DNA of 64,000 nt from the NCBI GenBank assembly GCA_964199315.1, contig OZ116698.1, forward strand, positions 44,392,001 to 44,456,000, given 5' to 3'. The translations under genes and the position numbers were made by a program. Every line of letters begins with the position of its first letter. The stretch's first letter is position 1. Under the pieces are notes generated by a model, which saw nothing but the letters and a program-made list of their open reading frames with translations, did not search any database and was not told where the DNA came from. Below are positions 48,885-53,700 of this stretch, piece by piece. Source of the DNA: Orbicella franksi. Taxonomy: Eukaryota.

Positions 48885-50366
48885 TCCAATGTAAACAGTG
48901 ATGACTCAAATGACTATATGTTCAGTCCGCGCGAAATTTCGCTATAAAGATCTATAAAACAGTGACGTTTGAAAACTATTTTTAAATTATTGGAGAAACA
49001 TAAACTAAAGATAACATTTCAGGAAAATTTTGTAAGAATTTTACTGAAACAATTATATTATTCTCTCTCGATTATTATTTAAAGTATGGAGTGTTTCTGC
49101 GACCTTTGGGTTAATAGTTGCCCACGCAATTAAATGTCATGTTCTAAAATACAAATGTTCGAGACCGCCTTGTATTAGCTTTTTAGAATATAAAAATTTC
49201 CAAAGGCAAATATCAGCACATTAGCTAAAGACATACTCTCTCTATCATCTAAATGTTTCCGCGACAGCACTGCATGACAGGAGACTAGACTGATGCTCAG
49301 AGCTTTTGAATTTTGCATTGAGATGTCGTTCCTTGAGTCAACTAAGTTAAGTTGAGTGTTTAACTAACATTCGTTCAGCTATTGTCTCCCAAATACGTAA
49401 AAAAAAAAGTCAAGACTGTCTGGCTTTTCCGGCTGGTCTTTGTTGTTTTTGAAATTCGTAACTTGCGTGTAAATGTTTCACAAAACCCGACTAACTTAGC
49501 ACAAATTTAGGCTGTAAACTGTTTACGTGAAGATATGAAGTTAAGTCTATTCAGTTAAGTTACCTTTTATGTCGAAGAGGTTTGTGAATTCCTCAGTTCA
49601 ACGTGTTCAAAACAAGCTATGTGGAAGAAGTGGTAAACGTTTGCAACCCTGCTGTACAATCAGTAACCACGTTCATTTCCGACTGAGAAATTGTCTTCAG
49701 AGATTACTCTATCCTCTCAGTCCGTGTAGATTAACAGTTTCTTTTGTACTTTCCAGTATATTTCCACGAATGTGAACAAGTCCTCTCTGAGCTCAATTTC
49801 CGGTTTCAACCAATGAGGTTTTCTATCGGTCTTTTCAGCTCGAGGAGACACACATGAACTTCAGTGTCTGTAAACTTTGCTGAAATCCTTGCTCCGTTTG
49901 GCTCACATAAAGAATATAAACGTTCAGCCCCACGAGTAATTCGTCATCTTTCGTTAGTCTTAATCGTTTGGCACAATTTTTCAGAAGTTGCTCGACATTC
50001 TGAGGAGATTTTGCGAGGTATCTCCGAAAGAAATTCTGACTCACTCACTGACACAAAAAATGTTTCATTCAACATGCTCACTGAACACCGCATCACTTGA
50101 CTTTGCCGCCTTTTTCCATAGTCATGTGATCAGACGCTTCGTTTACAAACGTTTAGTTTAAAACTGAAGGTAATCTACTCAGAATTTTACAAATTATTAA
50201 TTGAGGTAAAAACAGCTACTTTAATAGGCAAATTAGTGGCTCCTGATTTAGTATTCAGATATTAAAGTATCAGTAGTACTGACAGTTCCTAAATTTTTTC
50301 TCATGCTCAGTTTGTAAATTGACAATAAAGTTGACAGTTACTTGTGATAATACATTGTTCGTGGCT

Positions 50367-50414
50367 AGTCTTACGCAGCTCGTTTCGTCGCGGCCAAGGG
50401 ACTCATCAGAGACC
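50367..50414 (-). ncRNA. Type I hammerhead ribozyme, second complete copy (one stem II mismatch)
   Basis: Reverse complement reads GGUCU CUGAUGA GUCCC-uuggcc-GCGAC GAAA CG-agcug-CGUA|AGACU. Predicted cleavage at 50372/50371. Confidence 0.88.
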
Positions 50415-50667
50415 TTTCTGCTTGGCAAACTCGTTGGGCATCGCGCCCAAAGTCCCGTTCGCTAACAAAATGATGACAGCAATCTCGCCTTATATCGCAT
50501 AAGGATTCCCGACCGCACAAATTCACGAGTGAAAATTGACAATAAAGTTGACAGTTACTTGTGATAATACACTGTTCGTGGCTAGTCTTACGCAGCTCGT
50601 TTCGTCCCGGCCAAGGTTAGCGAACAGGACTTTGGACGCGATGCCCAACGAGTTTGCCAAGCAGAAA

Positions 50668-50715
50668 GGTCTCTGATGAGTCCCTTGGCCGGGACGAAAC
50701 GAGCTGCGTAAGGCT
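50668..50715 (+). ncRNA. Type I hammerhead ribozyme, all core nucleotides intact
   Basis: GGUCU (stem I) CUGAUGA GUCCC-uuggcc-GGGAC (stem II) GAAA CG-agcug-CGU (stem III) A17 (50710) | AGGCU (stem I). Predicted cleavage after GUA at 50710/50711. Confidence 0.92.
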
Positions 50716-53700
50716 AGCCACGAACAATGTATTATCAGTTTGTAAAAGGTACTAAATTTCATTTTCTTGCTTTTTTCCTCACTGAAGGAGAGAAAGGCCA
50801 TATTTTAATAACGAATACCTTCTGCATGAGCGTGCGATTCAAAAATTTTCCGTATCGTATTTATCTTATATTCGAGTCTTTCAGATCGCGTATGAAGTAG
50901 TCTAGTCTGTGTGTATCGCGGCACGACTGAAAACTTTGTAATGCTAATTACTGCAAAATCACAACCAGCTTTGCAACAGTACTTCGAGCTCTTTCAAAAC
51001 GTTAGGTCGTTCAGTTATTTTCGAACGGTCGAAGTTCTGACATTTATATACACGTCTTGCAAAGGCTCTTTAGAAAAGGTTTCTTTATTACTCTGTTAAC
51101 TCCCTCCTTCATCGTCATTTTCCTTGCTAGTTTCGTCATTTTACACAAATTGTCTGATTTCGACTGGTTTTTTTTCCCGCCAATCGATGAAATGTTTCCC
51201 GGATTAAGGCCCAATATTCTATTCACAGTATATGACCTTGGGTACTAGCAAGGCTCCTATTTGAATCTAGTACTCCGAGCCTTAGAAACATCTCTGCACG
51301 GGGTACAAATATTGGATGGTCTGCAGGCTTAAGCTCCGTATTTCGAAAGCTTATTACAACTAATCGAATCTTTCTTTAGAAACACTTCTACAATGAACAC
51401 TGCTATATGCCATCGCAGAGATAAGGACATATAAATTTTCAGTAAAATAACAATGTATTCTTTACGTTTTTACGAAAACGTACCTTGCAATGTACTCGAT
51501 TAATTCTCAAAACATTTCATTGAAAATTATTTATAATACATGCACATATTCGGCCTAAATAATCGACATATTTCAGTTGTTTCCTGCAAGTTACATAATG
51601 TCTGTTCCATTTTATAAACTTGGCTGTTCGATCTATGGAATACTTCATTACTGTAACACTGACTATAAGCCAGCGATATATCTACTGAAATCATTAAGGG
51701 CAACCTCAGTACAGCATTCATGCAATTGATATTACGTAGCGCATAGCAGCCGATGTCGGTTACTAAGGGAAGTAGCTACAGAGCCATTTTGTTTAGTTTC
51801 TGGGAAGGGGAAGATGTATATATTAAGAAATAATCATTTTTTTTTTCTGTGTGCATGAATCTTTTTGTTCTAATTGTTTTCAAAAGCAGATATTATGGTT
51901 TAAATTTCTCGAAATGTGCAACACATGACTAACTTTGAAAGTTGGTTTTTAAAATACGCATGTAAGCGATCTCCTACGGTTTGCAAACCTCTTATCTTCG
52001 CTAATTATTTATAATTTAGCCTTAAACGGCTTGCCTTTTTTTAAGCTGCCACCAAAACAAGCTTAAAAGGATAAGTAAAGGTCTTTAAGTGATCTAAAAA
52101 AGCTTCACGCGCCTCAAAAGGAATGTTGGAGGTTAATTACAATGAAATGTCTCACCTCTGAGGGCGAATATACGCTCTTGAGAAGCCCTCGACAAATGGA
52201 TTAAAACGATGTCGTCTTAAGTGAACAGAGAAGAGATAAAACCGTTCGTATAGCAAGACTAAACGTTTTCAATGCCGATAACGTTTCACTTGGCATTGCA
52301 ACACGAAAATGACAATAGGGTGAAGTGATGAATAATTTAGCACTTTTTCGATTCTCTGCAGGGTGTAAATACAAAGAGGGCTTGGAATAAAACGTCGAAG
52401 TGTAAAGCACAAATATCTTATTGTTTATCAGATCTTCATCTCAGAGAACTTATTTTGAATAAGATAAAAGGCGAAGTGGTTCTTTCCGGAAACGCCTATG
52501 ACTCGGCTTATGGGGACTACGTGATGCGAGGAATCCAAAATCCCTGAGTGCTAAACACTCAAAGATATGTTCTGAATACTTATCTCCGTTTGACAGCTTT
52601 ACCACATTGAACTACATCTTATAAACAGAATAGTCATTATGTAAACCAGTTGTCTAGGTTCTCATTCTCCCTGCTCTACTCACAGCGCGACTTGTGGGTC
52701 TGTAACAACAAAGGCTTTCTCGGTATTTCTGCCCTGTGGAGAGCACCTAGTGAGCTACCGGTTTTAGGCAAAGGGCGAGGTGCTTAAAATGAACAATTAA
52801 AATAGATTTTTCCACGCAGTGGCCTGCTACAAATTCTTCCGTAAAAAGATATGCCAATCATAAGAGAATTAAGAAAGCATTTAAATTATGAACCGAGCAA
52901 AACAGAGACATCTAAATTGATAATGGAGATTTCACACTAGTTCTCTCTTGACAGGAGCCGAGGAGTATCAATGAAAGCAACGATAATAGAAATAAGTTTA
53001 AGCTTAAATGATTGTTGTTTAACTTTACACGGAGAACTTCAAATAAATCATTTACACTGCACAATGCCCTCACGTCTCTCTTCTGTTACAATAAATAGTA
53101 GAAACTCTGGGATGTTGTCGAACATGGACAAAATAATTGAATATAGTCCTTAGTTATGTAAGCGCAAGAAGTGCAAATGCGTACTGCGTTTGAGAATGAC
53201 TTGAAAGGAATTGTTTACCAATTTTTCTACGGTCGTCTAGGTGTACATGAGGATTCGTCGACGAATTGCTTAGCTATGGCGGCCAATGTGACTCTGAAAT
53301 CGGGGATTCAAGCGTTCAAACGAATTCCAGTTGGATTGCTAAAGCTAATTATAAGATTCATGTGAAAGGTTGTCTAGAAATGATATAGATTGAAGGCATT
53401 TAAGAATTATTGTAGTGATAGAAGCGTAAAATTGAACGTTGAACACTTTATGAAACCTCAGTCTATTAGACAGTTGAAGCCGCCTTCTATCTTAGTTTCA
53501 ATCAATTACATGTGGAGTATTCACATAAGAAAAATAAACCAATGTATCTTTTATTTCGTACAAGCCGTACCATGGCCAATATGTCAGTATTCAACCCTTT
53601 TAAAATATGCCAAAACTCCCGTCTGACAAAACGGATGTTCAAAGTAAAATTGTTTGAGTTTGTACGAGAAAGATCATTAGTTCACGCAGTTCTACGTCAA

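Follow-up and report, generated by a model that had tools for sequence, protein, structure and literature searches.

Insertion scars of a hammerhead retrozyme family in a stony coral point to twin priming by a Penelope-like enzyme

How does a small repeat without any reverse transcriptase or endonuclease gene come to lie in a genome as two head-to-head arms bracketed by a single target-site duplication, and which kind of enzyme placed it there? We addressed this at a stony coral locus within a 64-kb window, i.e. the whole stretch of DNA that was analysed, in which one insertion consists of about 1.4 units of a 217-nt non-coding tandem repeat carrying a hammerhead ribozyme. A first-pass annotation of this DNA had read the junctions as the record of a single target-primed event in which both 3'-OH ends served as primers and yielded head-to-head cDNAs, a reading supported by our data at the locus as well as across the family. 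The window's own 217-nt unit, not a family consensus, served as the reference throughout.

Anatomy of the locus and its ribozymes

The window contains the 12-mer TCAGTTTGTAAA at two places and no others, 50307-50318 and 50735-50746; the chance expectation from shuffled sequences is 0.05 occurrences, and a count of two was reached in 0/100 shuffles. As the first-pass annotation had proposed, the two copies form an exact 12-bp target-site duplication sharing 3 nt with the element at each junction, i.e. its last three nucleotides, AAA (50316-50318), at the left and its first three, TCA (50735-50737), which also fit arm B, at the right. Between the copies we find a direct repeat (50313-50399 and 50530-50616, 217-nt spacing, 97%) and an inverted repeat of 122 nt (50345-50466 and 50616-50737, 97%). 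Arm A, on the reverse strand (50319-50616), comprises about 1.4 tandem units (unit positions 190-217, 1-217 and 1-53/56), and arm B, on the forward strand (50617-50737), is an inverted, 5'-truncated copy of 121 nt (unit positions 123-217 and 1-27). The outer ends of both arms are 3' ends, that of arm A adjoining the left duplication and lying in the "long" of two start zones defined below, that of arm B adjoining the right duplication and lying in the "short" zone. The 5' ends meet head-to-head at 50616/50617, where unit position 190 of arm A is joined to position 123 of arm B and G 50616 fits either arm, confirming the 1-nt microhomology previously noted at this inversion point. Arm A carries at its outer end a tail on the reverse strand (50316-50344, unit positions ~28-56) that the outer end of arm B lacks; this tail is the stretch that separates the two reverse-transcription start zones. 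The arms differ from each other at 4/121 positions, whereas only 1/222 positions distinguish arm A from L002, an independent copy that lies on a different chromosome. The copy at C6:8581341, one of the youngest, is likewise 1/222 from the locus. No ORF of at least 100 aa is present within 46-55 kb of the window, the unit being the repeat alone, and the locus is non-coding and devoid of LTR, PBS and PPT, as are metazoan non-LTR retrozymes.

Each full unit is predicted to contain a type I hammerhead with an intact catalytic core and a defined cleavage site. Both full copies at the locus carry CUGAUGAG, a 5-bp helix II, CGAAAC, a 3-bp helix III and GUA, the core of arm A lying on the reverse strand at 50372-50409 with the predicted cut between 50372 and 50371, and that of arm B on the forward strand at 50673-50710 with the predicted cut between 50710 and 50711. 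Helix II is intact in arm B, and a private G-to-C change introduces a C-C mismatch into helix II of arm A. Across the retrozyme family, N7 is the one strongly variable position of the core and also the one position that the ribozyme leaves free. A generic hammerhead motif matched the genome 861 times compared to 10 times for the reversed control. Of the Rfam models RF00163 (type I) and RF00008 (type III), neither gave a match reaching its gathering threshold, the top one being a weak match to RF00008 in arm B (50651-50705; 18.1 bits compared to a threshold of 48.5 bits, E = 0.46), which we attribute to the shortness of helix III. The minimum-energy fold recovered helix II alone, and fold stability was undistinctive for the monomer (z = -0.61) and the ribozyme segment (z = -0.06).

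Insertion scars across the retrozyme family

In the 497-Mb genome the unit has at least 82 matches and the tail motif 119, with retrozyme arrays outside the locus reaching 5.6 units, many copies being slightly longer than one unit and copies selected by the tail motif alone spanning 39-264 nt. A pile-up of lengths at one unit plus 3-40 nt was set aside as largely an ascertainment effect, only the longest matches having been scored, and an overrepresentation of 5' ends at the cut site of the ribozyme as mostly an artefact of the monomer query. Old copies of the family bearing the same ribozyme lie within a larger repeat (L108-L111), and a sister family that is 68% identical also has this ribozyme (L112).

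The first-pass annotation had asked whether other copies show target-site duplications and microhomologies, and they do. Flanking repeats of at least 9 nt are present in 17/51 independent insertions (null 0.7%) and of at least 12 nt in 8/51 (null 0), the target duplications of the family usually measuring 9-14 nt. At the 3' junctions, microhomology averages 2.17 nt compared to 0.60 nt for the null and reaches at least 2 nt in 14/23 junctions (binomial p = 4e-8). The targets are AT-rich, as for Penelope-like elements.

The 5' ends are scattered along the unit and the 3' ends are fixed, the latter being bimodal and lying either 19-33 nt ("short") or 48-60 nt ("long") past the predicted ribozyme cut, an offset of ~28 nt. 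In the unbiased first set, 21 insertions with a single arm end in the long zone and 4 in the short one. An inverted, 5'-truncated head-to-head copy is found at the locus and at 17 other independent insertions, and of these 18 two-armed insertions 13 pair a long with a short end, none pairs long with long or short with short, one is shifted with a 27-nt offset kept, and four have one aberrant end. Within the unbiased set the pairing is long with short in 7/7, which has a probability of ~1e-4 to 2e-3 if the arms chose their zones independently. Two-armed insertions account for 8/33 of the unbiased set and for about one third of the set picked by the tail motif. The L1 figures used for comparison of 5' inversions reportedly go back to Ostertag and Kazazian in 2001.

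Where an insertion has several units, these resemble one another no more closely than units of separate loci do, and no private variants common to both arms were found in the two-armed insertions, their arms being as unlike as separate loci. An empty allele with a single 12-mer, which the first-pass annotation had proposed as a check, was not seen at the orthologous site: it is filled in 3/3 related coral taxa, whose contigs enter the element from both flanks, and no joint skips the element. The paralogous empty sites of a tandem copy on C1 (L097-L100) were rejected as a substitute, ~30-45 nt being replaced there with no clean duplication. Contigs from an RNA library, which as contigs cannot reveal ends or circles, span the element together with its flanks at an element/flank depth ratio no higher than in DNA runs.

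Resident Penelope elements and the mechanism of insertion

The genome harbours 1018 GIY-YIG candidates, 150 of them scoring above the cut-off of Pfam, and a 1023-aa ORF with GIY-YIG. Homology to this GIY-YIG-bearing Penelope ORF, extending through the YIG...R..H motif region, is shown by an ORF in a hammerhead-flanked 3.9-kb palindrome from one of the resident families that carry hammerheads. Hammerhead-bearing resident families are arranged head-to-head in 16/16 close pairs, and short resident Penelope palindromes have one arm ~55-70 nt longer than the other, 15- and 19-bp duplications and 5-nt junction overlaps. One resident palindrome has two long arms, meaning that the one-zone-per-arm pairing of the retrozymes is not a universal Penelope rule. 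The first-pass annotation had called for a comparison of the family with resident elements; in both of the two Penelope families sampled, tail and duplications are longer than the ~28 nt and 9-14 bp of the retrozyme.

The first-pass statement that the partner enzyme of animal retrozymes is not firmly established is a fair one; Penelope-like elements have been proposed in the literature. We screened 13 GIY-YIG loci, five other hammerhead families and all tail-motif matches, and among these sampled loci, with the best 40 candidates scored, no autonomous Penelope-like partner sharing unit, ribozyme or tail was found; neither did the sampled Penelope loci contain a pseudo-LTR homologous to the coral retrozyme. 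The best GIY-YIG loci (L031-L042, L056) were rejected as partners, having neither a hammerhead nor similarity to the unit. We also rejected a tandem of 3,781 bp on C1 that carries the same ribozyme: its interior has neither a reverse transcriptase nor any Pfam domain and is a mosaic of repeats that occur separately elsewhere, which makes it a local segmental duplication with a single copy of the retrozyme inside. Matches to the tail motif (at most 3 mismatches in 24 nt) are confined to copies of the retrozyme family, and none is a LINE 3' end.

The anatomy of the locus, the recurrence in the family, the two zones with one zone per arm, the excess microhomology and the scars of resident Penelope elements, all of them observed directly, point with a probability of roughly three in four to a retrozyme insertion made in trans by a Penelope-like reverse transcriptase/GIY-YIG endonuclease, i.e. 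to twin priming of the Penelope kind. Since the locus shows the published signature of Penelope-like elements and resident Penelope families have the same scars, we favour this over twin priming of the LINE-1 kind. This supports a model according to which the enzyme would cut both target strands ~12 bp apart and each 3'-OH end would pair over 1-6 nt with retrozyme RNA in either of the two internal zones, the top-strand end (...GTAAA) taking the long and the bottom-strand end (...CTGA) the short zone. The two cDNAs would then extend toward the RNA 5' end for 304 nt and 121 nt, their ends would join head-to-head via the 1-nt overlap, and gap filling would generate the 12-bp duplication. The identity of the enzyme, this order of events and a template in the form of either a circle or a multimer are what we infer from the scars.

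An inverted arm might also be produced by Penelope machinery if only one DNA end primed and the cDNA folded back on itself, the element's endonuclease then cleaving this intermediate at a constant position within the tail region and thereby creating the short end. Such a snap-back would account for L009, in which both arms start at unit position 202 and the inner junction is symmetric, for L081, whose arms both end where the ribozyme is predicted to cut and share a near-palindromic overlap of 5 nt, and for resident Penelope palindromes with perfectly symmetric arms and 0-1 nt between them. At most loci, however, the inner junction is asymmetric (190 compared to 123 here), which simple snap-back does not yield, the short-zone end, like the long-zone end, has microhomology with the duplication, as expected of a primer, and purified Penelope protein extends both strands (PMC11167929), making us regard folding back as unlikely. 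Slightly less probable still is that a resident L1-, CR1-, L2- or RTE-like enzyme mobilised the ribozyme RNA in trans, as for a SINE, priming the second strand internally as in human L1 5' inversions. The first-pass annotation had recognised the twin-priming signature of L1 in the geometry, and this part of the likeness holds: one duplication spans both arms, the 3' ends face outward, microhomology occurs at the inner and both outer junctions, and about a quarter of the insertions are two-armed. It fails at the primers, neither arm ending in poly(A), a simple-repeat tail or an RNA 3' end and the arms beginning in two fixed zones instead of at the RNA end and a random site. Starts confined to one zone per arm, partial tandem copies and a ribozyme are all hallmarks of Penelope elements, and at no more than 3 mismatches in 24 nt the tail motif is found in no other element of the genome. 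The choice of enzyme offered previously, "LINE-type or Penelope-type", can be narrowed to the latter, fixed zones ~28 nt apart with one per arm being the tail signature of Penelope-like elements (PMC8557442, PMC11167929).

The differences between the arms, which are no more alike than copies at separate loci, could be taken to indicate two adjacent insertions in opposite orientation or a later inverted partial duplication by replication or repair. Against this, both arms lie within one exact 12-bp duplication and no further duplication is found inside it, the same architecture and end rule recur at no fewer than 13 other loci with differing duplications, and the differences fit ~1% post-insertion decay over 425 nt; we consider an origin in more than one event very improbable.

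Returning to Penelope-kind twin priming, we tentatively suggest that in vivo the enzyme may act on a single template whose two start zones are not equivalent, one for each broken DNA end. This would explain the obligate pairing of long and short, with a few base pairs between primer and template setting the position of each DNA end. If this holds, small retrozyme families would serve as natural reporters of the Penelope integration pathway.

Comparison with known systems

Metazoan non-LTR retrozymes were reported by Cervera and de la Pena in 2020 and first detailed in the coral Acropora millepora (PMC7229834). The elements described here resemble them in being non-coding tandem units of 150-450 bp, each with a type I hammerhead, in their low GC content, in ranging from dispersed dimers to long arrays, in target duplications of more than 4 bp and in residing in a coral with abundant Penelope-like elements. 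The unit of 217 nt compares to 220-245 nt reported there, and the very short helix III (3 bp with a 5-nt loop) is nearer to the "minimal" Penelope type than to canonical coral retrozymes (PMC7229834). Within the text consulted, inverted arms, two classes of 3' ends and junction microhomology are described neither in this paper nor in a later review or a recent preprint, the word "inverted" being absent from PMC7229834. Penelope-like elements were proposed as retrozyme movers from co-occurrence and pseudo-LTR homology (PMC7229834, PMC7761336, bioRxiv 10.64898/2026.07.22.740005). The last of these, by Li, Clavereau and Pollet (2026), reaches the same conclusion for vertebrate retrozymes, namely dependence on Penelope-like elements, using co-occurrence and pseudo-LTR homology in Xenopus, whereas our evidence is the insertion scar. 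Insertion scars are evidence on the enzyme moving retrozymes that is independent of co-occurrence and, in frogs, of sequence similarity.

With LINE-1 twin priming the retrozyme insertions have in common that a single duplication encloses two head-to-head cDNAs, each started from one of the 3' overhangs left by a staggered break, that the inversion point shows microhomology and that about a quarter of insertions are affected. In LINE-1 the first primer anneals to the poly(A) or RNA 3' end and the second at variable internal sites. The retrozyme has neither a poly(A)-anchored first primer nor a random second one, both starts being fixed zones, and its arms cover the same unit positions, whereas LINE-1 arms are adjacent parts of a unique RNA.

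As described by Evgen'ev and Arkhipova (2005) and Craig et al. (2021, PMC8557442), Penelope elements insert as partial tandems truncated at the 5' end, next to which lies an inverted copy, and one end of the insertion bears a tail of 30-40 bp. The purified Poseidon protein cleaves and extends both strands, using two adjacent internal start sites the interval of which is the tail (Frangieh et al. 2024, PMC11167929). The retrozyme family shares with them the 5' truncation, the partial tandems resembling pseudo-LTRs, the inverted, 5'-truncated head-to-head copy, the one-sided tail, priming by both target strands and two adjacent internal starts downstream of the hammerhead. Unlike Penelope-like elements, it has no reverse transcriptase/endonuclease ORF and must therefore be served in trans. 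Its tail of ~28 nt compares to 30-40 nt in published Penelope elements and 55-70 nt in the two resident families. Primer-template microhomology, clear in the retrozyme family, is not reported in vitro, and the strict use of one start zone per arm was not seen in the sole in vitro study (PMC11167929). As both the type of element and the mechanism are already published, the result is incremental; these last two features are quantitative additions, testable at the bench, that bear on integration by Penelope-like elements, the least understood class of retrotransposons. Retrozyme copies carry the full and rather unusual Penelope signature, extending even to the pair of internal start zones, for which biochemical mapping dates only from 2024.

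Anatomy of the insertion and its hammerhead

Only two copies of the 12-mer TCAGTTTGTAAA exist in the 64-kb window (G000:C1:44392001-44456000 of the 497-Mb assembly), at 50307-50318 and 50735-50746, with 0.05 occurrences expected in shuffles of the window. Between both copies lie a direct repeat spaced by 217 nt (97% identity) and an inverted repeat of 122 nt (97%), the arms of which join at 50616. Numbering the unit from the first base 3' of the predicted hammerhead cut between CGUA and AGAC, the left arm comprises unit positions 190-217, 1-217 and 1-56 with the minus strand as sense, and the right arm positions 123-217 and 1-27 with the plus strand as sense. 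The 3' ends of both arms adjoin the duplication, their 5' ends face each other head-to-head and have one base in common, and AAA at the left and TCA at the right junction are each compatible with both duplication and element. All details of the first-pass annotation are correct. The one-sided tail between the start zones occupies 50316-50344, and over its 425 nt the insert departs from the nearest family sequence at about five positions. The window also holds a tRNA gene match on the minus strand at 19055-19127 (Rfam RF00005, 41.8 bits).

Full units each contain CUGAUGAG, a 5-bp helix II, CGAAAC, a 3-bp helix III with a 5-nt loop, and GUA. We call this motif a putative hammerhead, judged by its core and not by the Rfam model; the best match, the type III model with 18 bits, stays below the gathering threshold and the minimum-energy fold recovers helix II only. 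Comparison of about 80 family units revealed N7 as the sole strongly variable core position, which is the one position left free by the hammerhead ribozyme. A generic hammerhead motif has 861 matches in the genome versus 10 for the reversed control. No open reading frame of at least 100 amino acids was found in the 46-55-kb part of the window.

Target duplications, start zones and junction overlaps across the family

The genome contains at least 82 matches to the unit and 119 to the tail motif. Reading 77 loci and removing segmental duplicates resulted in 51 curated independent insertions, for which the duplication was taken as the best word common to the left and right boundary windows, with mismatched left/right pairs as null. 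A flanking word of at least 9 nt is present in 17 of the 51 (null 0.7%) and one of at least 12 nt in eight (null none), most duplications measuring 9-14 nt. The duplication at the window locus therefore follows the family norm and marks the insertion event.

The 5' ends of family copies spread across the unit while their 3' ends are confined to two zones, a long one at 48-60 and a short one at 19-33. In the first set, which is unbiased, the single-armed insertions comprise 21 long and four short ends. Among 18 head-to-head insertions with both outer ends readable, 13 combine a long with a short end, one has both ends displaced, to 41 and 68, keeping a 27-nt offset, and four have one canonical and one aberrant end; none shows two long or two short ends. 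If each arm chose its zone independently, the 7/7 of the unbiased set would be expected with p of about 1e-4 to 2e-3. With a long end on one arm and a short end on the other, the interval of about 28 nt between the zones lies at one end only. In the minimum-energy fold of the monomer, which is no more stable than shuffles, the short zone lies within the AUCACA loop of a small hairpin (50343-50367, minus strand; about unit 14-38), which may recall the Anolis Penelope element with its 'AC-rich stem loop' as start site.

A 70-nt mini-insertion at L081 (G000:C5:15292941-15293604, positions 123-192) consists of a 54-nt long-zone and a 21-nt short-zone arm, both ending at the predicted hammerhead cut and overlapping in a near-palindromic AGWCT. 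This single case is as expected of two cDNAs run off ribozyme-cleaved RNA and then annealed end to end.

Microhomology was measured at junctions fixed by duplications of at least 9 nt, swapping duplications among loci as null. The overlap between duplication and element averages 2.17 nt versus 0.60 nt and reaches at least 2 nt at 14 of 23 junctions (p = 4e-8), an excess supporting the earlier proposal of DNA ends annealing to the RNA. A possible alternative source of the overlap is an endonuclease preferring sequences which resemble the start zones. Fold-back synthesis followed by endonuclease resolution is likewise possible for some copies, and the symmetric inner junctions of some family members fit this route. 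Both a circular monomer and a multimeric transcript as template are compatible with copy lengths and unit comparisons, and the two arms may derive from one RNA molecule or from two.

Age and related repeats

Contigs of three related coral taxa (flank divergence below 1%) extend 23-52 nt into the element from both flanks and none skips it, so that the empty allele anticipated by the first-pass annotation was not found among them and the insertion is older than the split of these taxa. An independent 226-nt copy at L002 (G000:C6:8579841-8583056, positions 1501-1726) differs from the left arm at one of 222 positions, so the family was active at about the time of insertion. This sole difference, which is among the five or so positions counted above, is a G-to-C change by which helix II of the minus-strand ribozyme acquires a mismatch; only the window copy has it.

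A sister retrozyme family (L112, G000:C1:19603800-19605100, positions 510-746) is 68% identical to the unit; it shares helix II with the unit but departs from it in helix III and in the stretch downstream of the cut. At L057 (G000:C1:22530800-22535700), an array spanning about C1:22524164-22543458 repeats a 3,781-bp unit five to six times in tandem. Every such unit includes a single retrozyme copy (retrozyme positions 67 to 57), around which two other dispersed repeats form a mosaic; reverse transcriptase is absent from this tandem unit. In retrozyme-free paralogues, a replaced stretch of 30-45 nt ends in tail-like sequence (about 11 of 15, by eye).

Comparison with Penelope-like elements and LINE-1

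The genome abounds in Penelope-like elements: it contains 1018 GIY-YIG candidates and a GIY-YIG-bearing open reading frame of 1023 amino acids. Two other hammerhead families show a (minus, plus) arrangement in 16 of 16 close pairs, and the reading frame of one, which forms the 3.9-kb palindrome described below, is homologous to the GIY-YIG-bearing one (E = 4e-10). In short palindromes of these two families, one arm is longer by some 55-70 nt, overlaps measure 5 nt, and the flanks are duplications of 15 and 19 bp or (TA)n targets. Three insertions of another hammerhead family, independent of each other, with a 15-bp duplication (L101, G000:C1:7642180-7642770), a 19-bp duplication (L102, G000:C1:14512300-14512880) and (TA)n flanks (L103, G000:C1:19939750-19940340), have a common inner junction, their 75-76-nt arms lying 0-1 nt apart, 9 nt upstream of CUGAUGAG; either it is the palindrome as such that is mobile, or the template RNA's 5' end is fixed there. 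A 3.9-kb perfect palindrome (L113, G000:C1:7132900-7138650, positions 1710-5633; 99%, no spacer) consists of two 5'-truncated Penelope-like copies. In each copy the reading frame closes with a GIY-YIG-like region, and a hammerhead follows about 80 nt beyond the stop. On both outer sides the palindrome has an end of the long type adjoining (TA)n, showing that the one-per-arm rule is not universal among Penelope elements.

No autonomous element with the same unit, ribozyme or tail was found among the best candidates scored, so that the missing partner counts as weak evidence. Elements of this kind, the partner class proposed for them and the mechanism have been published before; our data add junction-level evidence within a retrozyme family and two measurable rules.

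In LINE-1 twin priming, the first primer is anchored on poly(A) and the second is placed at random. The retrozyme insertions have the geometry alone in common with it, as neither kind of primer is seen. The substance of the twin-priming interpretation is right, and the choice of a LINE- or Penelope-type enzyme can be sharpened to Penelope-type. Penelope-like elements are known as 5'-truncated partial tandems with hammerheads within the repeats. Frequently, a further 5'-truncated copy lies inverted at the 5' end, and a tail of 30-40 bp is confined to one end (PMC8557442). Frangieh et al. reported purified Poseidon protein cutting and extending both strands, and reverse transcription starting from two internal sites, which adjoin each other downstream of the hammerhead and whose interval constitutes the tail (PMC11167929). 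The retrozyme family reproduces all these described features.
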